Source of the DNA: Paramoeba atlantica
Taxonomy: Eukaryota > Protista > Discosea
Length of the DNA: 64,000 bases
Assembly (NCBI GenBank): GCA_977017575.1
Contig: CDRNVI010000048.1
Coordinates: 62,001 to 126,000 of the forward strand
Direction: 5' to 3'
Numbering within the stretch: position 1 is the first letter of the stretch; every line of letters starts with the position of its first letter. Below the pieces are notes generated by a model, which ran no database searches, was not told where the DNA came from, and worked only from the letters and a program-made list of their open reading frames with translations. Shown piece after piece: positions 4,479 through 63,924 of this stretch. Made by a program: the position numbers and the translations under genes.

Positions 4479-4690
4479 TTTTTCAATGGTTGCGCTCATT
4501 TTTAACTCCTTTCTGACAAAGCAAACCTGTCCTTGCATAAATCATGTGGTGCATCTTCCTGGCGAGAATGACGCACTTTTTGCTCTTTAGTGAATTTTAG
4601 TAGATGAGAAACTCATCTGCTTCTTTGACTGGTTCTCATTAGGCAGGCAATCATTCCACAACTGTACTGTTTCTTCGCCAGGATACATTA

Positions 4691-4990
4691 CCGTATACCC
4701 CACCAGTAAGAGAATGGGTTTTGGGTCGAAATGGCTAAATCTCCCTTACTGGGGGGGGTATGCTTTTTTGACCAGTTTCCTCTTTTCTCCCAACTTTTTT
4801 GACTATTTTTTTCTATTTTTTCTTCTGAAAACGTGTTAAAACGCTTATTTGGGTTACCCCCGAGGCCCCCAACATGCAGGCACCCACCCCCTACCCCCTA
4901 TACGCCCCCTGTGGGGCGCCCGAGCCAAATCTCTCTTACTGGGGGTCAGCCCCAAAAGAGCCAAATCCCTCTTTTGGGGGGGGTATACGG
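4691..4990. mobile_element. 300-bp MITE, CCGTATACCCC TIRs, TA TSD (pogo/Tc1-mariner-like)
   Basis: TA|CCGTATACCCC ... GGGGTATACGG|TA; internal repeats AAATCTC(C/T)CTTACTGGGGG. Confidence 0.85.
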
Positions 4991-5139
4991 TATGCATCTT
5001 TATCCAAGACCTTGATGTTTCACATCAATCACTGAAAGAACTATCGGACATCGGAGGCGCCCTTCGCCTTGATTTCCTATCAGGTTATCCGTCGCCTTCT
5101 GAGTCGGAGAAAGTGCATTATGCATCTGCGCTTGGTCTA

Positions 5140-5600
5140 TGGGGGTCCAGAGGGGGGGCGCAGGGGGGGTCCAGGGGGCGTACGTCGCAATTTTTTTCGA
5201 ATTTTTTGCCTTTCAACATCGAGCGCAGTGAAGTGGTAGAGTATGCCGCGGCAATAATTTTCCACCCCCCACCTGGGGGTGACCCCCCCCTGTTATGCGT
5301 AGGAGGGGTCCGACAAGTTTGAAAAATCCGAAATTTTTGGAGTGACCCAAAAAATAAATATTGACCAAAAAAGAAGTACTAAGAAGTAAAAATATTATTT
5401 TTCCAAAATCGACTCCTAACACGTATTTTAAGAGACTCAAAATGGAATAATTTCGAAGATAATAATTTCACATTTTGGTATGAATATGACCACAAAAAAT
5501 CAACAAAAAAAAATGAAAGTTTAAGAGTTTTGGACCTCAGCTAGAATTCTACGACGTTTTTTTCGGCAGATTAGCCTCCTGTCCCTACTGGTAAGGCATC
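5140..5600. repeat. Dispersed repeat family A, copy 1 (G/C-run-rich non-autonomous element)
   Basis: Reverse complement aligns by eye to 38383-38726, e.g. AAGAGTTTTGGACCTCAGCTAGAATTCTACGACG and GGTAAGGCATC. Confidence 0.85.
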
Positions 5601-6299
5601 AAAAGGCGGAAGAATTATTGAACGAAATGAGCCGAAATCCCACGTAGGAAGCACAGTGTGAATTACTTCGCACTAAAGGGCCTAGCGTCATAAGATCAAT
5701 CACACATGCTCGTAATGTTCGAGCTGTGACATGCCCCAAACTTGGTTCTACCCGGTGGATTTCTGATAAATTTGAAAGTATAAAGTATAGCTTGACTGGC
5801 CCGGCTCGGGTGTCAGTCACGCACACTTCCTGTACAATGGAAGGTCGGACGTTAACCTCATTCCCTTGCAAGAGAATTAAGAGGGCTGAAACTAGAGATT
5901 TACGATCCCGGCCGATCCCATCGGTCCTGGTTGAATTTACGTGGAAGAAAAGTCTTGGTGAAAACGCGAGTTCTAGAAATTCGGCGAAAGAAATAGCGAC
6001 CATTTTTTTACAGAAACTCATTCAATTGTTAAAAATCAAAAACAATATTCATATGAAGGTAGGAGAAACTAAACAAACATTTACTATTAAATAGAAAGCC
6101 CCTATATATTTTTGTTTCTCCTCTTTCGCTCTTTGGACTTGAGTGCAAATCTCTGCTGCGCGTATCCTTTGTCGTCTGATTCTTTTGCTTTAGCTGAGCG
6201 TTCTTTAAATTAAAGTACGTCCTCTGTGATTTTGACCCCTGCTCAGAACATTTTCCTATCCGACTAACGCCTTTTGAGGGGTTGAAGAAGTTCATCCAA

Positions 6300-6819
6300 T
6301 TGGTAAAACCTCTGACGCACGCGAAGCAGGTTGTCACGAGAACACTGCGAAGCGTTGGATTCAGCGATACGAGGAGACAGGAGACGTGGATAATAACCCG
6401 AGCTATAACCCTCATTGATGAAGGTACGCGAGATTTGCCTTATGGAATTCCGTCATGGTCGAACCTCGTGTCAACCCTTCAGTCCGAAAGGTTTTATTGT
6501 TCCCGGCGCTCTATCACGCGCACTTTAAAGCGTGAAGGCATCATTTTGCACACTGTCCCCCGTCATCCAGCTCTTACGGCTTCCCACAAGCAGAAACGAA
6601 TAGAGCTGTGCCGCGAGCTGTCGGAGTGGACCCCTCATGATTTTGAGCCCTCACCATTTTGATGAAAATAGTGTCACAATGCTAGCTTGGCCCCCTCAGC
6701 CTCCTGATCTCAACCCCATCGGAAATATTTGGGGACAAATTGAATCACACAAAAATACTAAATGTACCAAAAATAGGGGGGAATTGCGTGATGCAATACA
6801 TTCAGGGTTCAATTGCTGA
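6300..6819 (+). pseudogene. Tc1/IS630-family transposase remnant, catalytic core deleted
   Basis: HTH AREAGCHENTAKRWIQRYEETG; linker HPALTASHKQKRIELCRELSEWT; C-terminal WPPQPPDLNPIGNIW; frameshifts. Confidence 0.85.
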
Positions 6820-6956
6820 AAGTACTTTGTTGAAGGACTTTTCCCCCTCTAAAAGCCCGTACTGTTCTGTTTAACAAGTAAAGTACTACTTAACAAGCAA
6901 AGTTGATACGAGCAAAGTTGTAGATACGATCATTGTCGTTTTAGTATCGTTCTCCA

Positions 6957-7066
6957 TTTTTTTAGTCTCTTCGTTAAACGCGGCAGTAGTTTTCAAGGGG
7001 AAGCGCGCAGCAGTGGTGTCATCTAAGTTGAAAACAACCACTACATTTAATGAAGAGCCTAATAAA
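6957..7066. repeat. ~110-bp foldback (two ~40-bp imperfect inverted arms)
   Basis: TTTAGTCTCTTCGTTAAACGCGGCAGTAGTTTTCAA / TTGAAAACAACCACTACATTTAATGAAGAGCCTAA; solo arm at 38242. Confidence 0.75.
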
Positions 7067-7555
7067 GGATAAAAAGTGATAGAAAAAAGGTCAAAGTAGT
7101 AAAAAATACAGTGTCTTAAGAAGCTACGCAAGCGCCGATCCCGACCGATCCCACCCGATAAGTGACAGGGTCCTCCAGGTTTCAGCCCTCTAAGTGTACC
7201 TGTATTTACACACACAAGTCCGACCTGTTAGCCTCGGACCAGCAGGATTATAGGATACCTTACACATATAGGAAGTTTCTTTCCGAGCAATTATCCACTG
7301 TGGTTAAGAGCGAGCTCGAAAGTTTACGAGTACCACAATCCGTTCACGAGCTTACTAACATACTCGAAAATAATTCCATTACAGAACTTATTCAATGTGC
7401 TAAAGAGTTTCTTCAAGAGTGTGCTCTGTTGCGCGTTGCTCAGGAAAAATTTTCTGCTATGCATGATCGATCCATGGCCGCGTTAGTGTATCCTACGTTG
7501 CAACAACTCATAGAGTCCTCCGAGACTGCTCCTCTACACATGATTGATGCTATTA

Positions 7556-8449
7556 GTGGGTTGAAACCTGTGAAAGGCAAAACCTGGCAAAACCATAGTG
7601 GCAGTTAATAATTATTATAATGGAAATTATTAATCATTTCTATTATAAAAAAATCCCAATTATCAATAATTATTAATAATTTTTCAATGGTACCTAAAAT
7701 ACTCAATTTTGCGGCCGTCTTCGGGAAAAAATGAATCTGCGGGAACAAATTTCTCTTTCTTGCGGACTGGCACAATGTTCGGCAGGTGGCCTAAGGAAGG
7801 GGGTGGTGAAAGGCGGGTGTGGTGAAAGACCGGGGCGTGTTCTTAATTAATGTTTCCACGGTAAAATAATTATTATTTTTTAAACATAATTATTATTAAA
7901 GACTAAAATTATTAATACTTCTGCCACTATGGGCAAAACCCGCTTATGCTTCATAGATGTGGCGAAGCAAAGTGCTTTGTCAAAAATAGTGAAGAATATA
8001 CTTGGTCTCCATGCGCTGCAAAATATTTTTTGCGCTACAAAAGGTGAAACTTTTGAAAAAAATATTTTTCGAAATAAACCCCCAGAACGGGTAGCCGAGG
8101 TCTTGGCGCACATTTTCCACCTCCGTACTCGAGGACGACCCCCCCCCCTCGTATCAACAGGACGGGGCCGCCAAGCTCGGTATTTTCTGAAAAGAACATT
8201 GAAAAAAAAGTCAACTTGGCGAAAAACATGGCTTAAAAAATAGTTTTTCAAAATCGTTTCATCTATTGTATTTCGAGAGTTTGGGACCTATACTAGCTTT
8301 CTATGCCGTTGTTTTCACAAGATACCCCTTCTTGAAGCCGTGACACGCCTCCCGAAATGATGTCCCAAAAAATTGGTGTCCTGGCAAAACCAGGCGAAAC
8401 TGGGCAAAACCTGGCAAAACTCGGCAAAACTTAACAGGTTTCAACCCTC
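7556..8449. mobile_element. TWA-TSD element 2 (PIF/Harbinger-like, non-autonomous)
   Basis: TTA|GTGGGTTGAAACCTGT ... ACAGGTTTCAACCCTC|TTA (15/16 TIR); GGCAAAAC subterminal repeats at both ends; excision restores the flanking frame. Confidence 0.85.
8100..8310. repeat. Diverged copy of repeat family A nested in TWA element 2
   Basis: TTTTCCACC..GACCCCCCCC..AGGACGGGGCCGCCAAG and TTTTCAAAATCG..AGAGTTTGGGACCT match family A motifs. Confidence 0.55.
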
Positions 8450-9002
8450 TTAATGTGCACGTGAAGCGAGTTTCTAACAAGAACGAACTGCTGATTTGGG
8501 GTTCACTAATGTGGTTTTCGCCGGAGTGGATTGTGCTTTTCGCATGCCCGCGTAACAAAACATCGATTTCTGTTGAGCGCGCCGTTCACGCAGTCGAACT
8601 GGTTCTCCTATTTTTGAAACTACGGAAACCGATTGGTCTAACTACGTGACGTGCGAGGATTACGACTGGACTTCAGAGCTAAGCGACGTGGACTGGTGGA
8701 AGCAAGTTGGCAAAAAACGTTTTCCTTCCATATAGGGATGGGCACGCAAATGTGGTGGGGTCAAAATTTCTATAGCTTGGCCAATTTGTGTGATGCACCC
8801 GCATATTACCTTTAACAACAACCGTACGTTACTTCTCTAACAATGTCACAGCCTGTGATTCCATTCTTTCTGTATTTGCGAGGAAATATAATTCTCGGCA
8901 AGTGAGCATAGGAATCGATGTTGTGGCGACTCAGATGTTTCTGCGAGGTAACGAAAAATCATTAGCTCATCATGCAAGCAGTGCTAAATTAAAGAATAAA
9001 TA

Positions 9003-9302
9003 CTATCCCCCCTATTTAATAGGGCTACGTGCGACCCCCTTTAATAGGGCCATTTTGTCTGGAAGACCAAAATAGATCAAATTCTTTTTCTCGAATCCGC
9101 TGCGAAGGGGCGATTTTTTTTTCGTGCCTACCCCAACAACAAAAAGTGTGTCAAAAGCGAGCAGCAGGACCTTGTTTAACAACGATAAAAAAAGGCGCCG
9201 CGAAACGGCGCCGATTTTTTTCTTTCACATTATTTTCCATGTACCTCCCTTTAAAAGGGCATTTTTCCCAAAATCGGAGTCCTATTAAATAGGGGGGGAT
9301 AG
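9003..9302. mobile_element. 300-bp MITE with 21/22-bp TIRs and TA TSD
   Basis: TA|CTATCCCCCCTATTTAATAGG ... CCTATTAAATAGGGGGGGATAG|TA. Confidence 0.85.
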
Positions 9303-9402
9303 TAGTAACTAATGAACAATCCCGAACGAAGTATCTCTACTCTGAAAAATAGCGATCATAAAGACAGAGGCTCCTAATGTGAGCTTGCGTTCTCCATTTT
9401 TT

Positions 9403-9465
9403 ATAGATGATATAGATTTTATAGGTGATATAGATTTTATAGATGATATAGATTTTATAGATGAT
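9403..9465. repeat. 18-bp tandem repeat x3.5
   Basis: ATAGATGATATAGATTTT units at 9403, 9421, 9439, partial at 9457. Confidence 0.9.
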
Positions 9466-10335
9466 TGTAGATGATATTCGGTTAATCTACTAGCCGATTA
9501 GTACTAAATTAGTAATTACTCGTTGGTTGCATAGCTCAATGGGCGATCTTATCCGCATTACCCAATCCTAAGCCTGGGGAAGGTCCAAATCAGGACCGGG
9601 GGAGGAGGGTGGAGAAATTCCTTTTAAAACAAAAAGAGATATTTCCTCGAGGTTTTGATGACTGTTTAGAGTGCATACATGTTTTAAGCGTGGGTGGCTA
9701 TTAAGCTAGGATAGAATATATAAACCACTGTCCAGTTTATGACCATTGCCTATGACCAGTTACTGTGTCGGGGGGGGGCACAGTAAGTTGTCCTGGGGGT
9801 ATTTCGTGTGTCCCCCCCTCAGGAGGAGATCATTTTTAGATTTTAGATATTTGTTCTTTGAGCTTTTCAACACCTTTTATAAATTTTTCACGGAATTTTT
9901 AAAAGCGAGTCTGATAGCTACTCCACCGATAGCACAGAAGAACACGATACTGACGATGAGCGCGAAATTTCGGATCAAGAACTGGAGGTAGTTGATTTTT
10001 CGACTCTTTTCGATGAAAAAAGAGAAGACGGCTATACTTCATCCGAAGAAGACGAAAACAATGAGATGCGCAATCTAATCTTCTCGAGCAACACAACGTA
10101 CGTAAACGTCTTTTAAATAGAGGCGACCGCACAGCTGGAATCCCTGTTTCTGGGAAGAAAATTTATGCCTCTATATCTATCAAAGACAAGCGTTTAGCTG
10201 TCCGACTTTTCCGACACTATGAAGGACAAGCAGAGTGGTTCTCAAAGCTACAAAAAAAACTTTTCATGGCTACCAAAGGAAGGGTTTTTCTGAGATCACG
10301 TGATCAGCTACAAAAATGGAGGAAGCTTGTAGTCG

Positions 10336-11492
10336 ATGCCGCACGCGGAATGGGAAACAGAAAAAAGGTTGCGCACTCGTCCTCGTTCAACTGATCCTGT
10401 TGGAACTGAATTGCTTGAATGGTACACGAACTTACGCTCGCAAAATATGAGAGTATCGGTGGCGGCAGCAAAGGCGAGAGCTCGTGTTATAAACGGAACT
10501 CCAGTTTCGAATAAGTGGTTTTACCGTTGGAAACGACAGCATGATATTGTGCTAAGGTCTGTTCAGCGCACTACTACTCGCACCATACAAGAAATTACCG
10601 CATTGCTCAACTCTTTTCATCAATTCCTTTACAATATTCTTTTAGCAAGCATTGTTAGTATAATAATCAACCTGGATGAAATTCCTTTTTCCCTAAGTGG
10701 AAGTATGAATTCTCGGTCCACTTTAAGCGATCGCGGATCAAGAAATGTTATTTGAGAGGACCCCAATTGGGATCGCCGATGCTGCTCTTATTCCTTCTAA
10801 TTATTCCTGCAATAATTGGCATAATAAAAAGAGAATGTGGTTTCTCTCCATTCAAATTGCGTTGCGCGGTACTGCTAAGGCGCAAATGTAAAAAGTCGTG
10901 GGTTCTTTCTAACCCTTTTGGTTGGCTAATTGAAGAAAGTTCATCCGGTGTTATCACAAGTTCAATGATGGTGGGTAGCATAATTCCTTTTATTCGTGGT
11001 CAAGTAACTCCTTTGCTTAGTGGAACCGAAGTATGCTTGACTATCATGGATGGTGCCACTGGGCATACCACTTCTCCTGTGAAGCGTTGATTTTCAGAAT
11101 TTTCGAAACTGGCTATCATTCCAAGTGGCATGACTCAATTTGTACAAGCGATTGATACGGACTACGCAGCGAAGTTTCTGCATAATTACACAATTCAACA
11201 TTACCAGCCTTGGGTTTTGACTGGCGTCCGGAAGATAAAGTCCAAAAGTGCTGCTGAACTCATGGTACGATGGTTGGGAAAGGCGCATGAAAAAACTTTG
11301 AATGAATTTAACATAGTCTCATGCTTCGAAAAACTCGGCTACAGCAATGGTACCAACATTGCAATATCGCGCCTTCCCTATACGTTTACACTGAGCGTGC
11401 CGGACGTAATGATTGTTTTGTTTAAGGTATCAGACAAGGATGTTCTATTTCGTTGGAATCTTAGCAAGCAATGGGTTCCTCCTGATTTCTGA
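10336..11492 (+). pseudogene. pogo-like (CENP-B HTH + DDE_1) transposase pseudogene
   Basis: ELLEWYTNLRSQN..SNKWFYRWKRQH; INLDEIP; IMDGATGH; IPSGMTQFVQAID; internal stops and one frameshift. Confidence 0.9.
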
Positions 11493-12085
11493 GAAAAAAC
11501 AAGAATAAACAGGGCACGCATTCAATGTTACTGGGCAATACGTACTACTGCATTTAATTACCTCTAAATTAAGCAATTCAAAGTTACTACTACTACTACT
11601 ACTACAAATAAGTGGGGGGCCGCAGTAATTGTAATCTAAACAAGCTCATTGTTCTTTGTTTTAGCCCGTCCTGCGCGCACAAAATTCTCTTGATGAGATC
11701 TGCAAAGTGCAACAAAGTGGGGGGTCACTTTTCGTGATACATGTATTTCCAGTAGTATATTTATTGAGTATGTTAGCCTAACTTACTACTTAACCTTAGG
11801 TGTGTTTTGCTGGCAAGTGAAATGTACACCAGAAACAGCACCAGAGACAATATCGCCTTACATAATTCGATTTAGAAAACGCCTTCGGTTTTCTCCCACA
11901 TAACGACTTCTCTTGTTTTGGGGGGGGGGCGACCCCCCCCCCGATCATCAATTATATCAGAGCATTGCATACTGGAGCGTCGGTATAACTCAAGTGCTCC
12001 AATGGACTTGCCTCACAAGTTGTGACCAAAGTGCATCGAGTATGACATCTTGCGAACATGTCTACCCAACTACGGAGTAGTCTGA

Positions 12086-12235
12086 ATCGAAATGCAGTCT
12101 TTCGTCAAAGCATTCGTCGACGACCTCACGATTGTCACAATCACTCCGAGAGGGCTCCAACATGCAACCAACCATTTAGTCAAAGTGCTAACTGTCATGG
12201 GCCTTCGGCTCAATGTAAAGGGTCAAAACTACTGA
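12086..12235 (+). mobile_element. Non-LTR reverse transcriptase fragment
   Basis: Hand translation MQSFVKAFVDDLTIVT...MGLRLNVKG (FxDD and GLxLNxxK motifs); too short for the ORF track. Confidence 0.75.
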
Positions 12236-12294
12236 TACCCTAAAGAGTGAGAATAGCCCTTACTTTATTCTTCATCCTCTTTTCTGGACTGAAG

Positions 12295-13215
12295 TCATGG
12301 CATCGTTCGGTACTTTGCATCATTCCATTGTGGAATGGCGCGGCGAACGTCTTGAGCGCCGCGTAGCACTTTAATAAGAAACTCACAAAGGGGTTCCCAA
12401 AAGTTGCACAAACGCAGAGGTGGCCCAGAATCTTCTTGATGGCAGTTGGTAAAGCTAAGAACATTTTCTGGATGAAATTTCCCCTTTTCAGGAGTATCGT
12501 CCACAAGTACTGTATTATGTGCGTACCACCTACCAAGAAGACAAACATCTCCAAGCCAAATCTTTCGAAGGTCCTTCACGGTTCCATAAGGCTTTTCAGG
12601 TGATGTATCGGGAGTGCAATGTTCGCGTGAAAGGACAGCAATAATTTTCGTTCTGCTTTTGCTGTCTAGTAAAGAATTCAAGCATTTCTCCGCAGTTTTT
12701 TTTAGCGAACTTGTCCAAATCGCCACCACAAAGTAATCCAAAAGAGTACGAATGGCGGATTCCGCTCCAAGAAGGGGCACACAATTTCCTTTTCGTGTTT
12801 TTCTAACCAAGACACCATTCAAGTCCAACATTAACAACACAGGGTACCGCGACAAGATGGATCTTTCAATATATTCATATGACATACAGCAAGTGTAACC
12901 TAATACGGAACGCAACGAAACGTAGCCTTTTCCGTTCCAACTTTTGTGCAAGCGCTTAATTTGCATAAATTCGAACACGCGATTATCGTTGTTTTGAACT
13001 GCAGGAGCGCCATGAACAGCCACAGATGGTATGAGTTCGTCCAATGCATACCTTAGAGCTCCACAGGGAATTTCAGATACCTCCGACCTCACCTTCACAC
13101 GTATCCAACGCTCTGGTTCAAGCAACATATCACCAAGCTTTTGTCGTGCATAGTTAATGTTAGAGTGTTTATTCCATACAGACTGTAGCCGTTTTAAAAA
13201 ATATTCTAACATCAA
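12295..13215 (-). CDS. FCP1/NIF-like HAD phosphatase-domain protein
   Basis: LLMLDLNGVLV, VAIWTSS, TVKDLRKIW, NTVLVDDTPEK..HPEN. Confidence 0.85.
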   Translation of the reverse strand: MMLEYFLKRLQSVWNKHSNINYARQKLGDMLLEPERWIRVKVRSEVSEIPCGALRYALDELIPSVAVHGAPAVQNNDNRVFEFMQIKRLHKSWNGKGYVSLRSVLGYTCCMSYEYIERSILSRYPVLLMLDLNGVLVRKTRKGNCVPLLGAESAIRTLLDYFVVAIWTSSLKKTAEKCLNSLLDSKSRTKIIAVLSREHCTPDTSPEKPYGTVKDLRKIWLGDVCLLGRWYAHNTVLVDDTPEKGKFHPENVLSFTNCHQEDSGPPLRLCNFWEPLCEFLIKVLRGAQDVRRAIPQWNDAKYRTMP

Positions 13216-13463
13216 CCCCCATATTTCAAAAAGGTGAGAAACTATAGACTAGAATGCTTCACAACTACACTGTGGACAAGATGCGTCCTACAAGTTGTGG
13301 GCTACAACTCATGTAGAAAATTATTAAACAATGTAAGCGACAAACATAAGCAAGCTTTTTCTTATTATAAATATTTTCCAGGACCTTGAAAAAAATCTAT
13401 CTTCATCTTATGTAACATCATAATAAATATACTTCATATCAAGAGAATGTCAGCGAATTTTCC

Positions 13464-14546
13464 TCATATGTCTTGCGACATTCTCGGCGGGTCAGTCGGA
13501 GGAATTACTCGAGAAAATAGATCTTCTTCACTTATCCACTGATTATTCACATTTTCTATTTCATGCGAAGCGGGCTTCGAAAAGGAATTTTCTTGCATTT
13601 CCAATAAAATTTCATTTGTCCTCTTGTTTTGCTCCTCTGTGAAATCTTTGGGTAATGGTGTAGTGTAAAGTTCCTCGCTATACGTGCTGGGGCCTTGTAC
13701 CAGCTTCTCGTTCGCGCCAAATTGGTCCCAAGTTCCAAGCGCGTAAGAACCTGAAAGTGCATCTTCGGAGGAGCCCTCGGATGTACTGCTTGATAATTCT
13801 GCCCCATCGATCTCTTTGGCCTGCATCGATTGATAATTGTGTTCCTTTAGAACACATTTATTCCACTGGAGACAGTGAGGTCGAAGATCCTGCGCTTTTG
13901 AGATTCTCAATAAGAATGGAAGAAGATTCTTTTCGCAAGAAGTCGGTATTCGTGGAACCGACAACACATTCTCCGCGAATTCCTCCAGTAAGGGAGCCGT
14001 GTCCTCATTTTCTGAATCCGAAGAGGAAGAAAGAAGTGCAGCGTCAATATTCGATATAAGAAGAGTGTTACCCGATTCCCACCTTCCGAAGTGGGATTCT
14101 TGTTCCCAAACATCCTTAAAAAGATGGGAAAGGTTCGCAGTCATTGGAGTCGTGAACTCGGAATTTTTTCGTTTTTCAGCGATGCTAACTATGGTAGGAA
14201 CAACGACAGCAAAAGAATATCGTACTCGTACTGTCTGCTCTATATGTCCGACGAATCCTAAAGCGTAGTGTTGGCGTAGTGTATCAAGAAACTTCATGGA
14301 ACTGTCAATGAACTGGGAAAGATACGCTGAGTCAAGGAGCAGCAATTTGGGTAATTCGGCTGAGTGCAACGCTAGTGATCTTGTGCTTATCCTCGAAATA
14401 TACCCATATTGTGAGTGAACGCGTGTTATGGTACTTTCTTTCCCAAGAAATTTGCAGGCTTCGCGGGGACTTGAGTGATTAGCATTATTTTTCCAAGGAA
14501 TACTGTCGCAGAAGAACCAGGTTCCAAGATCGTATTTTAAATCCAT
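13464..14546 (-). CDS. LsmAD-domain protein (ataxin-2/PBP1-like)
   Basis: WDQFGANEKL..STYSEELYTTPL ... EEDLFSRV. Confidence 0.8.
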   Translation of the reverse strand: MDLKYDLGTWFFCDSIPWKNNANHSSPREACKFLGKESTITRVHSQYGYISRISTRSLALHSAELPKLLLLDSAYLSQFIDSSMKFLDTLRQHYALGFVGHIEQTVRVRYSFAVVVPTIVSIAEKRKNSEFTTPMTANLSHLFKDVWEQESHFGRWESGNTLLISNIDAALLSSSSDSENEDTAPLLEEFAENVLSVPRIPTSCEKNLLPFLLRISKAQDLRPHCLQWNKCVLKEHNYQSMQAKEIDGAELSSSTSEGSSEDALSGSYALGTWDQFGANEKLVQGPSTYSEELYTTPLPKDFTEEQNKRTNEILLEMQENSFSKPASHEIENVNNQWISEEDLFSRVIPPTDPPRMSQDI

Positions 14547-27638: not shown

Positions 27639-30600
27639 TTACCAGTTCCCATTTCCTGGAGGGAAATGGTGCTGGCCTGGATAATATTCTGGAGGAAATG
27701 GATAAGGTGGGTACGGAGGATATTGAGCTGTTCTCAGTGCCGTAAGTGCGGGATGAATAAACCGTGACCGATACCCATCAAAAGGAATCATTTCTGGGCC
27801 GACGAATTCCGGGGGTGGGTGAAAGGGTGGCGGCATCTCATGATGAAAATAACTATCCTCGAGATCTTTCCTTTGCACCCGCTTTTGGTTTTGAGAGAGA
27901 GACCCATTTTCGGAGGTAGCTTTCGTTTTTCTGGAATCTCGTGCTGTTCTAGCTGTAGTGCTTGATTTCTCTCCGTGCAAAACTTCCGCAGACGTTCGAT
28001 TAAAACTTTTCCTGCGTAGGTCACGGCGAGCTCCTTTGTCATTCTTTGTACGCGGTGATGGTGATTCTAAAGGTTTAGCCTCCAATGAAGAGTCTCGAAT
28101 CTGTACCTGATCAGATTTTGTCACGTGCGATTCTAGAGTGGGATTAATGGTGGTCTTTTTCGGCATCGCAGCATAATCCTGAGTCAGTATTTCGTTTTCA
28201 GGTGTTTTAGTCTCACTAAGTTTGCTTTCACCATTCTTTTCGGTTGCTTTTTCTACTGGAATAGTACTTGGCAACGATTCTTTTTTCGTTGGGATGGTTC
28301 CTACTACCACTTCTTTTTCAAGTGGAAAGGTTCTTGATACCGCTTCCTTTTCTACTGGAATGTTTGGTATCGCTTCTGTTTCTACCGGGATGCTACACGT
28401 TACCGCTTCTGTTTCTACTGGGATGTTTCTACTGGTACTTGGTGCAGCTTCCTCTTCTATTTTCTTGATTTGACCGTCAACACGTTCTTTTTCGACTTCA
28501 TCAAACATTCTTTCGACTTCTTTCATTGTAAGAACAGCATTCTGGTTCCCCATGACAGAAACTATATTAAAGCGTTCGCCAGAACCAGCAACCTCTGAGT
28601 CTGCTTTCTTTGCGCGTTCTTCGCGCTTTAATAGCTTCCAGGCCTCCTCCAGGGCAAGCGGGCATCGTTGTACAAGTTCAGGGTACATTGCAGCATATAA
28701 GCGATACATTTCTTCACGGCGTTCGCCAAATTCACGAAAGAATTTCCCCTTTCTGTCCTCCGAACTGTGATCTTGTCTCGGTGGTCGGCGAGCCAATTCA
28801 TCTTCACTGCTGCTTAAGTCACTCAGCCTGCCCGAGCGGGACACAGGGGGTGGCAAATGTTCAGCACAATATTGAAGCTGCGCACGGCGAAGTTTTTGAC
28901 GATTATGCAGGTCTGCAATGGCAAGCGAAAGTCTAAGGGATGCTGTGCCAAGTAGACATTTATTGTTTAAGGATGGAGTGCGGATGACCGTGAACTGATG
29001 TTTTGGTAGGCGTATGGTTGAGTTGTCTAAATGTTTCTCAGATTCATCTGATGTGGTCGTCTGTTTATCTAAAGATGCGGCTTTGCTGTCTATTCTCTGA
29101 ACCACCTTTGCGTTTGATGCCGCCTTACCTCCTTTTCGATCTTGCTCTTCAAGTTTTACTAGTTTCACGGACTGGCATTCTCCTTTTTTTGCTTTATTCA
29201 AGGAAGAAACAGGACGCGATTGAGGTACTTCTTTTGTCGTACAATCTTTCACCTTTTGAGGCGTTTCCCGTACAGCCGATGATTCATGCGAGGTGTCTGA
29301 AGCCTTCCAGTATTCTGAACGAATTCGCAGAACCTTTCTCCTAGAAATCAGACATTGCTTGGCAGCTACTCTCCAAGAGAATGCTCTTAATTCCTCTGAT
29401 TCAGCGTGCGTAAAAATTTTGCAAGTATTTTCTTCCTTGTTCGTGCTCTCTTTTAAAGCCTGCTCATGGCCTTCTTCTTTCGTCGTTGTAGACTCTTTCT
29501 TTTTTGTAGACCCTTCCTTTGTTGTTGATTCTTCCTTTGTTGTTGATTCTTCCTTTGTTGTTGATTCTCCCTTTGTTGTTGATTCTCCCTTTGCTGTTGA
29601 TTCTCCCTTTGCTGTTGATTCTTTTATAGCTTGTTCTATCGATTTTGGAGTTAAGCTGCTAAGATCTTTAGTCGCGCTGTCGCGGAGCCGAATAGCTCGA
29701 CGCTTTCTAGCAACGGAATCCACCATGTAGAAGACTCCAGGGGGTCGACGTCCTGTGTGTGAAAGAACAATTTCTCCTATGGTTTCGGTGACACCCCCAT
29801 CGTTAAAACAGGAAGTCGCAATGATCATGAGACCATCTCCCCACCAGGTGTTGCCACCGCCAGCGTGTAAGGCGCGAATCGCGAGCCTACGGAATAAGTC
29901 CCTTGTGGCCGTCATGGGGTCAAGCATTGCGCTGTGTTTCGAAATTTGCTGACTTTCGCTGTCTTGAAACAATTTTTCTGCTCCCACTCCTTTCGGAATT
30001 TGGCTTTCCCGGAGCAGGTCGGCCCAGGAAAATGGTGTGGAGAGGGGGTGTTTGCTGTAAAAGCTCGGATGCTCTATAAAGTATGGGATGTGATCTTGCC
30101 ATGACTTTCTTTTGCGCAAGCACTCTTCCCTCTTTTGATCGATTTTTGAAACATGAGTTCTCGACGTCCGAAAACTCGAAGCTCTGGACTTTCGCATCCT
30201 TTCCCGTGAACGATTTCGGTCCTGGCTGTGACCTGTTTTTCGTGCATTACGGATAGGTGAATATCTTCGGGGACTGCATCGTCTGTCGTACGATCTGGAG
30301 CGTAATCGTCGCTCCCTATCATGTGAACGCCTCCTCGGTCTGTGAGAGCTGACTCTATCGGATCTGCGGTGACATGGACTGATTGATCTGAAGCGCTTTC
30401 GTGTACGCATTTCTTTTCCGTGTCTAGACCTTGAGCGACCGCGACGCTCCGATTTGTGGCGACGGTAAGACCGCTCACGATCTCTTGAGCGCTCTCTTCT
30501 CCGGTGTGGAGTCGGTGACGCCGACCTCTTACGATACTTGTTTCTGCGACTCAGACATTCCTTTTCCGTATTTTGCCGTAAGATGTTATGTGTTACTTTC

Positions 30601-38241: not shown

Positions 38242-38280
38242 TTGAAAACTACCACCGCGTTTAACGAAGAGCCTAAAAAA
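38242..38280 (+). repeat. Solo arm of the 6957 foldback
   Basis: TTGAAAACTACCACCGCGTTTAACGAAGAGCCTAAAAAA. Confidence 0.8.
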
Positions 38281-38382
38281 GAAAAATCTCCAATACATCA
38301 TGAATAATCTACTTTTTTGGGGGAAGAAGCTCGATTTTTCTGCAAAAATTGCGAAATTTCACACCGAATTTGTGCCGTTTTA

Positions 38383-38726: not shown

Positions 38727-39307
38727 CTTTTTTTTCAATTTTTCATTTTTGGACCACCGGAGCCCCCTTTTATATTTTTTTCTTCTATTATATTGCTGTG
38801 TTTCTCTTTATATTTTCACTGTTTTTGTTCACTTTTTTTGCAATAATCGAGGGTAGAGCGGTAGTTATACAACCACCGCAATATTGTATGCAGTATGCAT
38901 ATTGTATACATATTGTATACAGGGGTACTTGTTGATGCGATAAATATTGCAAGGTGCTTAAAACGTACAGAAATTTATTTTTCCAGCATAAAACATAAAT
39001 ACGGTCCTCCACCTTACGGAGTCTTAACTAATATGGCGAACCGCTTCGCTTCTTCAATATACTGGATTACCATGTACGAAACGTTTTGTTTTCAAAGAAG
39101 AAACTATCTCGTGATAATGGGCAAATATTTTTAGGAACTCGAACTAGTATTTGAGGCTGATGTCCAAGCATCAGAACAACGAATTATTTACTGAGCTCAA
39201 AATTCGTGATGCATTAAGTGCAATGAATGTGATGTGAAGTTGGCATCACAATAGCACTGCGATGCGTTCAGGTGCATAGTCGCATCAAAAATGGAGATTT
39301 GCTATAC

Positions 39308-41287: not shown

Positions 41288-41379
41288 GTCATTCTTCCGG
41301 AAATCTATAAAGTTAGAGTCTATAAGTTAGAATATGCAACATTACAAGGAAATAATAATAAAATTATGTATACATAATA

Positions 41380-42132
41380 CAGTAGTATTCAGCCTCTTTT
41401 ACCCCCCCCCCCCTACAGGTCTTGCATTTTGTTCGATTTTGGAAATATTTTGTATGGGACTTTTTTCGACCCAATCGTTCCGAATCCGAGGTCCTTTTCA
41501 CTCGTGGGCACCTGTATCATACCTAAACCGGGAAAAAAACCGCAAAAAAGTCGATTTTTTTTTTCACAGAGTACATTTTTTTAAAAATTGGTACATTTGT
41601 TGGTGATTCATGAAGAAGAAGCACCGCCCCCTGTGCTTACCTTCCTGCCTCTTGTGCCCCGAGAAGCGCACGGCACTCGCGATCGATTGAGAGCGACTTG
41701 TCCTATAAGACACTCGAAAAATTTCATAAACTTAGCCCCGGGTCCATCATTGAAACTTTTCGCTTTTTTTCTGAAGATTAACCGGAAACGTTTAAGAATG
41801 CCTTCCGGGACTATAGTAAACGTTTTCTTTTGGTCAAGGAGGCTAAAGTGCATATGACTAAATACTAAAGATTACTTTGCACTCCTTTTACACGTCTTCT
41901 GACCTACTTTACTACTGTTCCTCATCCGAAGCATTCAAAAAAATGAGCCCAAAAAAGTTGTAATTAGCTTTTTTGACCCCTACCTGGCTAGGGGGGTAGG
42001 GGGTCGCTCGAGTGAAAAGGGCCTCGGATGCGGAACGATTGGGTCGAAAAACGGTGGTTTGTACCAAATATTTCCAAAATCGGACAAAATACAAGACCTG
42101 TAGGGGGGGGTAAAAGACGCTGAACACCACTG
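41380..42132. mobile_element. 753-bp Tc1-type non-autonomous element with ~130-bp TIRs, TA TSD
   Basis: TA|CAGTAGTATTCAGCCTCTTTTACCCC...; right end reverse complement CAGTGGTGTTCAGCGTCTTTTACCCC...|TA; arms align ~130 bp. Confidence 0.9.
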
Positions 42133-42303
42133 TATGTAGCTGTCTTTTTTATAGGCTATTAGCGATTAAAAGTTCTTTTAGGATAACTGTCAAAAGTGTT
42201 TGCGAGTACAGTACTGTACCCCACCGCATACAGTATAGTGTCAGGGGTTGTATGTTTCTTGCCAAGAAGCAGCAGTGGCAAACTCCTGCCACCTCCCCAC
42301 CTC

Positions 42304-49281: not shown

Positions 49282-49465
49282 GGGTGAGCGGAATAATGTA
49301 GTAAATGAATTGCTCTTAATTTTTTCATGAACTCAATATTATAAAAAAGTAGATATACATGATGTAGATATGCAGATGTACTGTTGATGTATGATGTATG
49401 TTTTGGAGAACAATCTTTTCAAATGGGCTTACAGTGTGCCAAGTTGGTAAAGTCCCAATAAATGA

Positions 49466-49855
49466 TTTTCCAAAAATGTTAAAGTTTTCTCGCAACAAAC
49501 TGAATTGAGACCAGACGGGTGGGTGAAGTTGCACAACGGGTCGGAATACATCATTGAGCTGACTTCCCCTTGGGAAGAAAACTTCACAGACGCACACGAG
49601 CGTAAGGTTCGTAAATACTCTCACATCTATAACGAGAGGAAATTAGAAAACCCTTCCACTTTCCTCCTGCTTTTTGAAGTTGGGGCAAGAGGAAAGTTAA
49701 ACGCCACAACCCGCGCGCTGAACTCTCTCTTCGGAGGATGCAAGAGCCTTGCCTCCGAGTGCAGGGAGAGAATGGTCCAGCGGGCACTCCGGGGAAGCTT
49801 TGTTATCTACCAGCACCGCGACAACCCCACGTGGGAGGTGCAAAGCTTCCAATAA
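49466..49855 (+). mobile_element. Restriction-like endonuclease (RLE) domain and 3' end of a non-LTR retrotransposon
   Basis: LRPDG..IIELTSPWEE..AHERKVRKY..FEVGARG; small hairpins in the downstream 3' UTR. Confidence 0.85.
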
Positions 49856-50326
49856 AGTGGTAATCCCCGAGTAAGTAGCACGTTTTGAGCGTGCTTACCT
49901 ACCTAGGGCTAATCTCTGCAGTAATAACTGCATGATTAATATACTATGCGCAACAAACCCAAAATTCAACACTGAATAGGGAGGGTAGCGCTCAATAGTA
50001 AATAGGGGAGATGGTAGTTACTTTTTCCCATTCTTTTTCCCTTTTCGAGGGTTTCGCCTAAACAAATGTCAATAAAAAAATGTCAATCTGTCATTGATTT
50101 CATTTTATCTCCTTTGTTAAATTATGACAACGGACAACCACACACAACTTGCACTGGAAAACGTCGTCCAAGACTTACTTCCAACTAGAAATGCACAGCT
50201 AACAAGGGAACAGAGTTACCCTTAATAGTTACCCAAAATCGGTGATAACGACAAAAAAAAACTATTCCGGTACCCATGATAATTGCACCTTTTAAAAAAG
50301 GGAAGCACGAATTTCCAGGAACGAAA

Positions 50327-50563
50327 CTATGCAACGAATAATTCAAGCACGTAAAGAAACCTGGCGGCAGCTGTAAGGTAGACACATTGCCTTGGGAGGT
50401 CTCTCAGCTTCACGAGAAAAGATGCCACTTTCGGCACCTTAGAATTAAACCACCTCTCCTTTACGGTTGCCGACTCCCCAATGTTGGCCGCAAGGAGTTT
50501 CACCCCATCCGGGAAATGCTCCATTTTGGTGTCTACGAACTCGTTGTATAGCTCGTGAGGGGA
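50327..50563 (-). mobile_element. CRE/SLACS-like RT-thumb fragment
   Basis: GVKLLAANIG..ERWFNSKV..LVKLRDLPRQC..RFLY resembles CRE-clade sequence after the RT core. Confidence 0.5.
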
Positions 50564-50867
50564 TTACGAGTCCCGGGTCTCTTCATCTACACATGGCAAC
50601 TGCATCTCGGGTCTCTGCAGCTACACGTGACAAGCTCTCTGCACGTGGGCCGCCAGCTCTCCGCACACATCCACCTCCGGCGAGGGCAACCCCTCACGCG
50701 ATCCACCCGTCGTGTGTGGGTAAGGATATTGTGCGAATTATCTCTGTACTACAAGTGGATAAAAAAAACTTATCTGCAGCTATAGCCCTCCGAACATATT
50801 GTCTACATACCCATCCATAGCCTACCTACCCACCATTGAACTTCTAGTCTTATCCGAAATTATGGTT

Positions 50868-56057: not shown

Positions 56058-56691
56058 CTATATTAAAGACATGAACGATTCTCCAAGAATTTTTGTTTCC
56101 TGGAGTGCACAGTACGTCATGCCAAGTGGAAGTGACTTCTTTTCTACTTCGCCCGATAACATTCTATTTGCACGCAGACACAGACGTTTCAAGCCCGGTG
56201 GAAGAGACGAAAATATAACCCAGCCGCTTAATTGATTTGCAGATAGATTCAGGACGGTCATTGTTGGAGGCAGTTCGGTCAAAATAATGGTCCCTTCAAA
56301 AGAATTGTACGAAGCATCAAGGGATTCCAAGCGTTGCGGTAAACGTGTGAGATCTATTTCCCCATTTAAATGGTTTATGTGTGCGTTGAATCGGCGCAAA
56401 GCATACGGCAGAGATTCCCATCTTACAGACCCTTTCAGTCTTAGTCGCTCACAATCGAACCCAACGACTCTCCCGTCCGGGGCACATTGCACTCCAAACC
56501 AAGAGCAGGCGGGAACGTTTGTAACCCACGAACCTGAAGGATTTCGAATATTGGCCAACATTCGCGACAATACAAAAAGAAGGCACACCTTTCACTCGGC
56601 CGGGGCGGCAACACGTCACCTTGGTTCCCTCGTCTGCGAATCCACCGATTATAAGAAACATTAGAAGATAGGAATTAGATTTTTCCATCAA
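56058..56691 (-). pseudogene. LRR surface-protein gene, probably frameshifted near its N-terminus
   Basis: ACSWFGVQC cap + LPxxLxxLxLxxNxxxG repeats (56058-56588); signal-peptide-like MEKSNSYLLMFLIIGGFA in another frame. Confidence 0.6.
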
Positions 56692-61095: not shown

Positions 61096-61303
61096 CAGAT
61101 ATGGTTTGTTTTTCTCTTTTATGGAAATTTTCGAGTATAACAAGAGTTGTTTTGAACTATGAAGCTCACCTATCAAGTAGAAAAAAGAAAACAGATTCAA
61201 AGGCGCGTGCGACATGATCCTGAGTCACAGGTTTAAATTTAGAGGAAGAGCGTCCGCTCAGGCTTGTGTGAGGTTCCTTTAAAGAAGGAACCAGCATAAA
61301 AAA

Positions 61304-61549
61304 CTATTTTTTCCTGTAAAGCTCTTCAAATTTTGCGAATGTTGCGGAGCAGATCATACCAGCCTGTAAGTGACGCTCGAGGCACCGCCTCATACAATCT
61401 TCTTCCCACCAGGTCAGTCGGTGAGTCCAGTAGGAGTGCACACATCGAGGACTACATGCTTCTGCCGCACTCATGTGTAGCCGATCCTCTTGAAGTCCTT
61501 TGAGAAATGAGAACTCTTGCTCCCACTCCGCGCTAAATCGAGAAGGCAT
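61304..61549 (-). CDS. Small Tim chaperone (twin CX3C)
   Basis: CSPRC-x15-CMRRC, 81 aa. Confidence 0.85.
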   Translation of the reverse strand: MPSRFSAEWEQEFSFLKGLQEDRLHMSAAEACSPRCVHSYWTHRLTWWEEDCMRRCLERHLQAGMICSATFAKFEELYRKK

Positions 61550-61957
61550 ATCTATAAATTCGTAAAAACCTTATTGTATTGTTCTATTTTGTTTTATAAG
61601 GAGTAGCGCTGTCAACATAATTTAAAATACAGTTACATTGTACATTTCGCTTGATTACTGAAAATCTGTTTTACCTCTATTATAACTTTTCGACTTTACG
61701 CCACTCGGGTTGAACCTTCATAACGTAGAAGCACCTATAGTGTACATCCTTGTAAACTTTATATCCCTCTCGAAGATTCCACTTTTGCCTGAAAATTTTG
61801 ATGAACCTTCTTCGGATGCGAAAGTCATCGAGCGCTTCGTGTTCTTGGAGCTTGCGAGAGTAATTAGTTTATGGTGGGTAAGATATAAATTTATTTACGT
61901 TATTGACAGAAATCATAAATTATGAACGCGGGCGGGTGCTGACGTTCTCATTCGTTA

Positions 61958-63302
61958 TAGGGTTGAAACCTGTGGTTTCAATGGAGGATAACATCATTGA
62001 GATGTGCGCACAGTGGATAACTACGCGCATTCGCCAACTCTCTGATCTGCTTTGGAATGCAGAATGCTTTCGGTGGAAATTTTGCAAGCGAGAATTGTAC
62101 CGCGGCACGGTGGTTATGTTAGATGCTGAGTAGAAGTTTGTAAACGAGTGGAAATCTAGGCCAGATTGTTTGTGTACATTTTTTAAGGATGATGCTAGAG
62201 ACAAAGAAGCAACAAAAGATTACCGCGACCGTATAAAGTGAGAACTTTACATTTCTGGGATCAGTAATGTAGGAAAGTGCCCAGCACATGCCAAGAAATC
62301 GGATGTAACATATACAAAGCTAACGAAAAGTGAAATTCTGAGGAAAAATGAAAAGTTGAAACTCATACACGATGAAGAACAAACTTCCAAGAGAAAGTTT
62401 CGCAAGTATTCCAATCAGATGGACAAGAAAATGTTTAATCAGAACGAATAATTTGGTGAAAGTGAAGCATTATTGCGCCAAAAAAATATTTTTCTCCAAT
62501 TTTCAAATATTGGTTTGAAACAAGTATGTTTTCTTTTAGAGTGTCAGATTATTAAAAATACAAACTTTTTTCACGGTTTATCACTATGAACTGCGCACAA
62601 TAACACAATTAATTAAGTTGTCTGCTGGAAGCCGAACCGTAACGCGCACTGATGGGTGGCGAGCGAGTCGCTCGCTGGGAAAAGACTTGCGGCATGAGAC
62701 AGTTAATCGTCGACGATCTTTGGTGCACACCAACACTGTTGAACGCATGAGTGAGATACTCAAGAAGGCAGTACGATCCCGTGGGAATGGGACCCTTGGG
62801 TGCTTTGATGAAGAAAGAAAAGATTGACCAAAGTTCAGCGGAGACGTCGTCAATGGTCTGAAGATCGGAAACAGCGAGGGAGATCCTTTAAAACAGCTGT
62901 GCGAAGATCTCTAATTAATGTGAAGACTCATCTTTTTAGAAGCGAAATCAAAAGAAATAAGTAGTAGCGGCCCATAAACGTAAAAAGATATCTGCATTTA
63001 TTTTTTTCAAAAAAGGCGCAATAATGCTTCACTTTGACCAAAAATTTATTCGTTCGTTATTATAATGTTATCAGAATCCGTGATACTATCCTCAGCGGTA
63101 AAAGAGTGGAGGAAGGCGGGTGTCCGCTAATTATTAGATAGGGTGATTTTTACTGAGAAAAAAGAATATCAGAATAATTTCAGTAAGGGCACGACGGAGG
63201 TCAAGTATTCTTCACTATTTCTGACTAAGTACTTTTCTTCACTACGTCAGAGTGGACTTCGCGGGTTTTGCCAGGTTTTGCCTTTCGTAGGTTTCAACCC
63301 TC
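61958..63302. mobile_element. TWA-TSD element 3 (PIF/Harbinger-like)
   Basis: TTA|TAGGGTTGAAACCT ... AGGTTTCAACCCTC|TTA; right end is the reverse complement of element 2's left end; left end lacks subterminal repeats. Confidence 0.6.
62540..62914 (+). pseudogene. Merlin (IS1595/ISXO2-like) transposase remnant
   Basis: GS..TDGWRA..LG..HETVN..HTNTVE..LKK; after one TGA the frame continues to GDPLKQLCEDL*. Confidence 0.75.
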
Positions 63303-63425
63303 TTAGTCAACTGAGGCAAGTCTAAAATAATTCGTAGTGGACACATCGTCCAAAGTTTATAATGATTAGAGGTCAAAGTTCTCATGGCCTCGAACAGGGG
63401 TCCGAATAACTTTATATAGTTTATA

Positions 63426-63924
63426 CAGTGGTTTCAGTTGATCTTGCCCCCCCCTCGGAATTTTGATTTTTTTGATCCGTTTTTGCTCATTGGAGTTTTT
63501 GCAGCATTGGAGAGATCTCATTCCCCTAGCGAAGAGCTTTGCCGCCTTTTTTTCATAGAGACCCCCTGGTGCCCCCTGGGTTCAAAAAGTACTGTTTTTA
63601 CGGAGTTTTTCTGTGTACACAACCATTTTTTGCCACATTTTCCCGATTTTCTGTGTATTTTGCACTTGTAAGTACGAGTGATAGCGTTCTAAATTGATAA
63701 TTTGAACGCTCTATGTCTAGTACCCTCTCTATTGCATAGTTCAATTTAGTCAACACCTCTACATTATGAAGATCAGACCCTCATACCCCAAACAGGGGGA
63801 GTACGTCGAACAAAGTAATGACAAAAGAGAAGACAACCCCACAATGTGTGCGACACAATTGAATTCGATCCCAAATAGACTTCGAAGCGTGTTGCAAAAC
63901 AATGGAAGCCATTCCGGACACTAG
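63426..63924 (+). mobile_element. Internally deleted Tc1-like element (left end + transposase C-terminus)
   Basis: TA|CAGTGGTTTCAG..CCCCCCCC resembles the 41380 TIR; SIPNRLRSVLQNNGSHSGH* at 63865-63924. Confidence 0.65.

Follow-up and report, generated by a model that had tools for sequence, protein, structure and literature searches.

Organization of the locus

The window analyzed here is the whole 64-kb stretch C48:62001-126000 of an assembly deposited under Paramoeba atlantica (45.7 Mb in 248 contigs); contigs are given as C numbers and loci elsewhere in the genome as L numbers. About 30 housekeeping genes occupy the minus strand of the window in a polycistron-like array (positions 2-61570, identified from lists of open reading frames [ORFs] and Pfam), which is broken by transposon-bearing gaps. 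In these gaps we found the remnants of five superfamilies of DNA (class II) transposons, namely hAT, Tc1, pogo, Merlin, and PIF/Harbinger. No ORF of at least 150 amino acids (aa) in the window matched a transposase in Pfam; transposon-like matter must therefore sit in the larger gaps between genes, which span 3481-12294, 37518-39307, 41288-42303, 49282-50867, and 61571-64000. Transposon-derived DNA makes up about 9 to 10 kb of the 64 kb (sum of parts) and is concentrated at 4.7-11.7 kb and 62-64 kb. The window has fragments and non-autonomous derivatives only, and none of its copies holds an intact transposase. The elements with a recognizable superfamily signature are the following:

5600-8970, plus strand: decayed C-terminal half of a hAT transposase gene, with in-frame stops, frame changes, and two nested insertions
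5600-5788, 7273-7554, 8440-8538, 8595-8747, and 8845-8970, plus strand: collinear pieces of the hAT gene (tblastn against L020)
5881-7191: nested insertion 1, a 1.3-kb non-autonomous PIF/Harbinger-type element with the terminal repeat GAGGGCTGAAAC and TAA on both sides, holding the Tc1 remnant
6198-6816, plus strand: Tc1 transposase remnant, with the helix-turn-helix (HTH) and the C-terminal DDE end left and the catalytic core mostly deleted
7556-8452: nested insertion 2, an 897-bp PIF/Harbinger-type non-autonomous element with the terminal repeat G[T/A]GGGTTGAAACC and TTA on both sides
10333-11489, plus strand: pogo-type transposase pseudogene, its frames broken by stops
62029-63305, plus strand: 5'-truncated PIF/Harbinger element with the right terminal repeat GGTTTCAACCCTC followed by TTA, and a Merlin derivative inside
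62455-63039, plus strand: 585-bp non-autonomous Merlin derivative with a 25-bp terminal repeat, GGTGAAAGTGAAGCATTATTGCGCC (one mismatch)

Identification of the five superfamilies

The gaps were scanned as 141 stop-to-stop pieces of at least 52 aa against Pfam, and five domains were matched by one piece each. Two of these belong to the Tc1 remnant, HTH_Tnp_Tc3_2 at 6198-6659 (E = 5e-7) and the C-terminal end of DDE_3 at 6604-6816 (E = 0.0018), and two to the pogo pseudogene, HTH_Tnp_Tc5 at 10333-10752 (29.7 bits, above the Pfam cut-off; E = 6.5e-7) and a weak DDE_1 at 11091-11489 (E = 0.035). The fifth is an IS1595-type DDE fragment at 62540-62824 within the Merlin derivative (E = 0.03). Because several Pfam matches were weak, we turned to queries derived from the same genome, using its intact transposase ORFs in tblastn against the window and hidden Markov models (HMMs) built from them. 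The HMMs recovered hAT (E = 1e-9), Tc1 (8e-9), both pogo pieces (1.8e-6 for 10333-10752 and 9e-6 for 11091-11489), and Merlin (1.7e-5). By tblastn, the Tc1 remnant matched the genomic Tc1 copies at an E value of about 1e-5, and the Merlin fragment was matched at 1e-5. Pfam gave no match on the hAT pieces or on the Harbinger fragment of the window, both of which were recognized through genome-derived queries. Pooling 20 mixed Harbinger ORFs into one HMM gave too diffuse a profile (E = 0.034), while tblastn with the matching lineage reached 4e-23. The initial annotation had listed these five superfamilies within 64 kb, and the combined evidence of Pfam, genome-built HMMs, tblastn, and terminal repeats places each of them beyond chance. 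The count of five requires that pogo be treated separately from Tc1/mariner.

The hAT pieces align to residues 428-741 of an intact transposase of 773 aa (L020:1494-3812; chain E = 1e-23 by tblastn), a part that spans the hAT dimerization domain PF05699. This domain scores 30.3 bits in L020 and 27.2 bits in L021, for a Pfam cut-off of 21.4. The hAT frame is interrupted twice in the window. The first break, from 5788 to 7273, contains the 1.3-kb element 5881-7191 within about 170 bp of additional sequence, and the second, from 7554 to just past 8452, is filled exactly by the 897-bp element 7556-8452. Both insertions share the terminal repeat GAGGG[C/T]TGAAAC, and the same repeat with TAA bounds an element elsewhere in the genome that carries an intact DDE_Tnp_4 gene of 382 aa (L043:720-2274). 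By this agreement with the L043 element, the two insertions are non-autonomous PIF/Harbinger elements; its terminal repeat recurs, again with a TAA/TTA duplication, in a third element of the window, 62029-63305. The first has genomic copies that include the Tc1 remnant as a composite (89-97% identity), as well as shorter copies on C69 and C34 that are devoid of 6074-6688; for the second, an inner unit of 520 bp has at least 20 genomic copies (83-88% identity).

The pogo pseudogene has no further DNA copies besides its allele on C90, and tblastn with ORFs from 26 sampled genomic pogo loci gave no match to it.

At the right end of the window, the truncated Harbinger element retains a C-terminal transposase fragment with stops (62029-62442), which matches the DDE_Tnp_4 transposase of 382 aa at L043:1024-2169 (minus strand; 37 bits to Pfam, compared with 63 bits for L036) at the E value of 4e-23 given above. 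The Merlin derivative, of which the genome has at least 20 copies at 86-98% identity, interrupts this element. Uninterrupted paralogs of 62029-63305 are present on C9, C29, and C7 (95-97% identity), and these three empty sites read straight through as ...GAACGAATAATTTATTCGTTC..., which defines the target duplication of the Merlin insertion as 8 bp with one mismatch (left, AATAATTT; right, AAAAATTT). That elements have moved in this genome is shown by these three empty paralogous sites.

Intact relatives elsewhere in the genome

Six-frame Pfam matches were counted over the whole assembly, including the low-GC (guanine-plus-cytosine) contigs described below. We obtained at least 35 matches to the hAT dimerization domain, at least 150 to DDE_3 of Tc1 (150 scored of 676 candidates), 106 to DDE_1 of pogo, at least 150 to IS1595 of Merlin (150 scored of 197 candidates), and 117 to DDE_Tnp_4 of Harbinger. 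Many of these matches lie in open frames of 330-900 aa, and ten representatives exceed the Pfam cut-offs. Among them, the Tc1 loci L024 and L027 reach 57-62 bits for DDE_3 in addition to carrying HTH_Tnp_Tc3_2, pogo is represented by L001 (DDE_1, 63 bits) and L004 (61 bits, plus CENP-B_N), and Merlin by L010 (53 bits) and L025 (42 bits for DDE_Tnp_IS1595). Element ends could also be traced. The hAT element at L019 (3.8 kb) has terminal repeats ATACCCTGG.. and a perfect 8-bp duplication, GTAATATC; at L020 the terminal repeats are present and the target duplication is not clear. For the hAT copy of the window, no ends were found. The 1.3-kb autonomous Tc1 copies at L024 and L029 likewise have no clear TA duplication at their ends. 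The Merlin ORFs are 380-450 aa long without stops, and the 1.8-kb copies are mutually 99% identical. Judged from divergence between copies, the identities of 97-99% suggest recent movement.

A further class II group is formed by Helitrons, the sixth in this genome: Helitron_like_N gave 25 matches on kinetoplastid-type contigs, some of them in open frames of 2,000-2,975 aa (for example, at C43:157712-158374 and C41:235197-235859).

In the main Tc1 family, the catalytic domain can be aligned with the Sleeping Beauty domain over about 230 residues (E = 1.6e-57) and retains the DE, DNDPKH, and SPDLNPIE motifs. Database searches with this transposase returned one protein of the European Nucleotide Archive (ENA) at 98% identity, followed by thousands of Tc1-like proteins of about 338 aa at 43-49% identity. 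Its few named relatives are from a fish, apart from one in a bacterial bin for which mislabelling is probable. The Merlin query returned nine relatives in all, one of them 98% identical (ERZ24900291), the others including a few closer ENA proteins; none is named, and none of the nine is a Bodo or Perkinsela protein by name. In ERZ24900291, the 98% identical Merlin transposase lies on contig ctg2587l and adjoins two reverse-transcriptase genes. This entry probably represents the same or a very close organism.

At L024:867-3533 (C30), two complete Tc1 elements of 1,306 bp stand head to head, 100% complementary and 55 bp apart. At least six such pairs occur in the genome-wide list, with similar ones on C12, C56, C6, and C11. 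They are either a mobile composite or foldback structure or an artifact of long-read assembly.

Gene array and other repeats of the window

The minus-strand array accounts for about 85% of the range in which the initial annotation had placed the transposon signatures (4635-63924). Nearly every long ORF between 2 and 61570 is on the minus strand; the ORFs are spaced by 60-700 bp and show no sign of introns. Pfam assigns to the array a NIF phosphatase, LsmAD, DUF2039, an MFS transporter, a DNA polymerase subunit B-like protein, ALG9, Noc2, a 2-oxoacid dehydrogenase E2 (acyltransferase), a GTPase, a cyclophilin, an actin-like protein, pyruvate kinase, a ubiquitin-like/leucine-rich repeat (LRR) protein, RNase PH, a kinase, a KDEL receptor, an ATG27-like protein, an LSM protein, and a small Tim protein, the ORF of which (61307-61570) contains the twin CX3C motif. 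Rfam gave zero matches over the whole window at gathering thresholds. Two ORFs of the array stand out for other features. One, of 176 aa (56058-56588, minus strand), encodes an LRR protein of a multi-copy family, whose other members (31-36% identity, E values down to 4e-21) lie beside transposons at L041, L049, L060, and L062. The other, of 1,193 aa (27639-31220, minus strand), has no Pfam domain and includes about eight imperfect tandem units of 18 bp (29475-29623).

Besides the elements listed above, the gaps hold miniature inverted-repeat transposable elements (MITEs) and other repeats:

4682-4998: MITE-like repeat of about 317 bp with terminal inverted repeats GAT[A/G]CAT..ACCGTATACCCC
9001-9304: MITE of about 300 bp with 29-bp terminal inverted repeats and TA at both ends (Tc1/mariner or pogo type)
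38217-38881: interspersed repeat block with inverted copies of 5192-5604 and 6958-7021
41378-42134: Tc1/mariner-type MITE of about 755 bp with terminal inverted repeats of about 120 bp starting with CAGT and TA flanks (TA, CAGT...ACTG, TA)
63418-64000: start of a MITE of about 760 bp with terminal inverted repeats of about 160 bp, extending past the window to about 64187

The repeat at 4682-4998 has at least 8 genomic copies (92-94% identity) and a word depth in read contigs about 40 times that of its single-copy flank. There are at least 35 copies of the MITE at 9001-9304 (77-87% identity) and at least 15 of that at 63418, the latter at 88-97% identity and with the inverted arm in each. The block at 38217-38881 matches repeats that adjoin transposons in L023, L039, and L070. 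A Harbinger relationship of the MITE at 41.4-42.1 kb, raised by a tblastn match to L036, was ruled out by its TA duplication and CAGT termini.

The translation of 49493-49834 (plus strand) is 67% identical over 114 aa to a zf-RVT ORF (L001:2813-3523, minus strand). It represents a fragment of a non-long-terminal-repeat retrotransposon, similar to long interspersed nuclear elements (LINEs), and thereby adds a sixth kind of mobile element to the window. All six oriented remnants (hAT, Tc1, pogo, Harbinger, Merlin, and LINE) lie on the plus strand, antisense to the gene array, an arrangement with a chance of about 0.03 (two-sided). Selection against sense-oriented insertions in polycistronic units may underlie this bias.

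Soundness of the assembly

Contig C90 is the second haplotype of C48. The comparison of the two covers 4404-13794 and about 60.9-64 kb of the window, and they are 99-100% identical over 4404-5908, 9607-13794, and 61216-64000. C90 repeats the junctions between transposons and genes as well as the Merlin insertion. In two runs of a single study, read contigs 5.6-6.0 kb long cross from host genes into the first repeat (at 4682-4732), and a further one of 2.2 kb extends from position 9275 into the pogo pseudogene. The assembly itself may have been made from these runs, and the read contigs thus serve as a consistency check, not as independent proof. In the unique parts of the nest of insertions, word depth equals the single-copy or half-copy depth of the host. 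The five transposon families are also borne by the contigs that carry KMP-11, tubulin, HSP70, RNA polymerase, and pyruvate kinase genes.

The two haplotypes differ by 3.7 kb. C90 joins position 5908 to 9607, with CGATG at the joint, and lacks 5909-9606 (L072, C90:85035-90725). Over 7166-8041 and 8423-9029, which are unique stretches, read contigs have half depth (about 58, compared with 117), in keeping with a heterozygous difference. Transposon excision was considered as its origin and rejected: the breakpoints at 5908 and 9607 lie in repeat and unique DNA, and the ends have no terminal repeats. A plain heterozygous deletion or insertion is more likely.

Identity of the host

The assembly encodes KMP-11 on C2 and C12 (151 bits), a protein for which 14 control genomes gave no match. 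The seven best matches of the window's pyruvate kinase in the PDB are all trypanosomatid enzymes, and its best database matches, at 56-62% identity with none above 62%, are from kinetoplastids and diplonemids; identity to the Perkinsela enzyme is 58%. Pyruvate kinase occurs at one locus (C48/C90), the genes for the largest RNA polymerase subunits form three pairs, and the tubulin and HSP70 loci are paired. From KMP-11, gene order, pyruvate kinase, and genome size, we read the host as a non-trypanosomatid kinetoplastid and not as a reduced endosymbiont. The kinetoplastid type of the genome, already recognized in the initial annotation, is thus borne out by the intron-less minus-strand array, KMP-11, and the affinity of pyruvate kinase.

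The 17-nucleotide (nt) spliced-leader motif TTACAGTTTCTGTACTT, called prokinetoplastid-specific (PMC7859406), has no match in the 45.7-Mb assembly, from which the spliced-leader array may be missing. The 14-nt spliced-leader core ACAGTTTCTGTACT occurs at 12 dispersed sites (for example, C3:645509 and C51:68766) that do not form an array; the reversed control has 0. At none of the 12 core sites do the flanks take the prokinetoplastid form, nor does the 3' flank agree with ACAGTTTCTGTACTWWWWTG, the spliced-leader form of other kinetoplastids.

A second set of contigs, about C137-C185 and C238-C242 (e.g., L013, L033, and L047), has a GC content of 35-38%. The piggyBac and MULE elements of the assembly are confined to them, and their Harbinger ORFs are unrelated to those of other contigs. 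Their internal stops are almost always TGA, with three in a full-length HSP70 gene (C181:7025-8842). One unpaired tubulin gene was found in this set, and no pyruvate kinase or RNA polymerase genes. The low-GC set is either part of a second eukaryote in which UGA is a sense codon or a compartment decayed by C-to-T changes. On one of these contigs, C185:24295-25680 is an 89% identical copy of the Harbinger/Tc1 composite of the window (5876-7195), and C185 also carries the Harbinger ORF family of 159 aa of the low-GC type. Transposon sharing or exchange between the two contig sets is a weaker possibility to account for this copy.

Alternative explanations

It is very unlikely that the transposon blocks were misassembled into the gene array or stem from a co-sequenced second organism, be it host, prey, or contaminant. 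The low-GC contigs, with their private piggyBac and MULE elements and TGA-only internal stops, do indicate a second contig class in the assembly, and the short-read contigs end at every repeat, so that no single one spans the whole nest. Against this, the independently assembled C90 has the same junctions at 99-100% identity in all three shared intervals, read contigs of 5.6-6.0 kb cross from host genes into the first repeat, and the unique parts of the nest have host depth, single-copy or half-copy. Moreover, the elements are nested in each other with intact target duplications, and Harbinger ORFs on low-GC contigs bear no relationship to those on kinetoplastid contigs. A misjoin, which the initial annotation had named as the finding that would overturn its claim, is rendered unlikely by the C90 junctions and the junction-spanning read contigs. 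Even less credible is that the transposase-like stretches are domesticated host genes: the pogo-like stretch is single-copy in DNA and retained on both haplotypes, as domestication would have it, but every stretch contains stops and frame changes, no ORF of at least 150 aa has a transposase domain, the stretches are all antisense to the host array, and four of the five are members of repeat families that have terminal repeats and target duplications.

The remaining alternative, proposed in the initial annotation, is a Perkinsela-like endosymbiont or intimate associate that received the five superfamilies by repeated horizontal transfer from its eukaryotic host. We consider it improbable, if less so than the two above. 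It draws on a single-gene tree in which the pyruvate kinase of the window pairs with that of Perkinsela (99/96), on the co-assembly of a second, eukaryote-like contig set, on C185, where the 89% copy of the 1.3-kb element meets a Harbinger ORF family otherwise found on low-GC contigs, and on the Tc1 transposase, about 45% identical to animal-type Tc1 and not to anything kinetoplastid. The Perkinsela branch in that tree is very long, however (1.65 substitutions per site), which makes long-branch attraction likely, and identities of 43-49% are far from those of a recent Tc1 transfer. The kinetoplastid part of the assembly measures tens of megabases, is diploid, and contains RNA polymerase, tubulin, and HSP70 genes in complete sets, whereas the genome of Perkinsela is reduced to 9.5 Mb (PMC7859406). 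The prokinetoplastid spliced-leader motif is absent, the low-GC set has neither pyruvate kinase nor RNA polymerase genes and may represent a decayed compartment instead of a host, and no amoebozoan protein is found among the named relatives of Tc1 or Merlin. Nothing indicates an amoebozoan donor of the transposases. The endosymbiont supplied by an amoebozoan host is therefore not upheld by an assembly of 45.7 Mb with haplotype pairs, no TTACAGTTTCTGTACTT motif, and no sign of an amoebozoan source of the elements.

With these alternatives weighed, the window is very probably a piece of a nuclear chromosome of a non-trypanosomatid kinetoplastid, whose one-directional array is broken by two class II transposon graveyards and by MITEs. 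A broader claim, toward which the evidence tips the balance slightly, is that class II transposons of this kinetoplastid lineage form a large and diverse mobilome that was mobile in recent times. It would comprise hAT, Tc1, pogo, Merlin, PIF/Harbinger, and Helitron elements in hundreds of copies, with intact DDE transposases and with MITE families whose copies are 97-99% identical. Several observations weigh against these conclusions. None of the copies in the window is intact, and the window alone speaks of past, not present, activity. Three of its Pfam matches are weak by themselves (DDE_3, 0.0018; DDE_1, 0.035; IS1595, 0.03) and lean on genome-derived profiles. The low-GC contigs harbor separate families of piggyBac, MULE, Harbinger, and pogo elements, and part of the raw genome-wide counts, mainly those of Harbinger and pogo, may belong to something else. 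Finally, the Harbinger element at L043, with 1,555 bp, has room for one ORF (382 aa), while canonical PIF/Harbinger elements have two; a second, Myb-like ORF is absent from it in the one Harbinger lineage looked at.

Comparison with known elements

The initial annotation had described DNA transposons as sparsely reported in kinetoplastids, which agrees with the searchable literature, where Merlin alone is on record: a few divergent relics are known from Bodo saltans and Perkinsela (PMC8101967), and a 2025 survey of 57 trypanosomatid genomes found no DNA transposon (PMC12278014). For hAT, Tc1, pogo, and Harbinger in kinetoplastids, we found no report in the searchable literature, with subscription journals outside its coverage. 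Outside the kinetoplastids, the genome of the diplonemid Diplonema contains MULE- and Helitron-like ORFs (PMC10161547).

The Merlin elements described here resemble those relics (PMC8101967) in having a eukaryotic Merlin transposase with DDE_Tnp_IS1595 in a non-trypanosomatid kinetoplastid, and differ from them by at least 150 matches, stop-free ORFs of 380-450 aa, and 99% identical copies. The Tc1 transposases have the size (about 340-365 aa) and the HTH_Tnp_Tc3_2 and DDE_3 domains of animal Tc1 (Sleeping Beauty SB100X, PDB 5cr4), and the MITEs share TA and CAGT; unlike animal Tc1, they reside in a kinetoplastid host, reach 43-49% identity to outside relatives, and in several copies form head-to-head pairs 55 bp apart. 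DDE_Tnp_4, short terminal repeats, 3-bp TAA/TTA duplications, and Tourist-like derivatives are shared with PIF/Harbinger elements and the related prokaryotic IS5 group, from which the 1.55-kb autonomous L043 element departs in its room for one ORF and no second Myb-like gene seen. As in Ac, hobo, and Hermes, the hAT elements have a C-terminal dimerization domain, transposases of 640-900 aa, short terminal repeats, and, at L019, an 8-bp duplication. In contrast to those elements, Pfam recognizes the dimerization domain alone, and the window copy is a fragmented C-terminal half; a sequence search of the PDB with the hAT transposase gave no match to any solved hAT structure. The pogo elements show the order of pogo, Tigger, and CENP-B, a CENP-B-type HTH (HTH_Tnp_Tc5 or CENP-B_N) followed by DDE_1, the window copy being unlike them as a divergent single-copy pseudogene. 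With the trypanosomatid mobilome (ingi, CRE/SLACS, VIPER, and TATE; PMC12278014), the locus has in common that repeats break polycistronic arrays and that a LINE-like fragment occurs. That mobilome consists of retroelements only, whereas here class II elements of at least five to six superfamilies dominate the repeats of the window.

Origin and significance of the transposon graveyards

The two graveyards, at 4.7-11.7 kb and 62-64 kb, consist of dead or non-autonomous copies that became inserted into one another over time. In the first, a hAT copy was struck twice by Harbinger-type elements, one of them bearing a Tc1 remnant; in the second, a truncated Harbinger element was struck by a miniature element derived from Merlin. 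The data of this genome demonstrate domain homology, terminal repeats, target duplications typical of the families (TAA/TTA for Harbinger, 8 bp for Merlin, and TA for the MITEs), paralogous sites that are empty, high copy numbers, and intact frames outside the window. DDE transposases supplied by intact copies elsewhere in the genome would bind to these terminal inverted repeats, cut the element out, and insert it anew with duplication of a target of fixed length, and internally deleted short copies and MITEs would be mobilized in trans. This mechanism is established for these superfamilies; for this genome we infer it, and any present activity or source of the families would likewise be a matter of inference.

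The elements are of known kinds, in a lineage where class II is essentially undescribed. The superfamilies being ordinary, the interest of the finding is taxonomic and evolutionary, not mechanistic. Kinetoplastid genome biology has been built on trypanosomatids. If the lineage does keep such a mobilome, the retroelement-only state of trypanosomatids would be a derived loss, dated to the trypanosomatid stem, and the inferred ancestral mobilome of kinetoplastids would change. The finding raises the question of how polycistronic units, with few promoters and trans-splicing, tolerate insertions, and this organism would be the first kinetoplastid in which cut-and-paste transposition inside such units could be studied.

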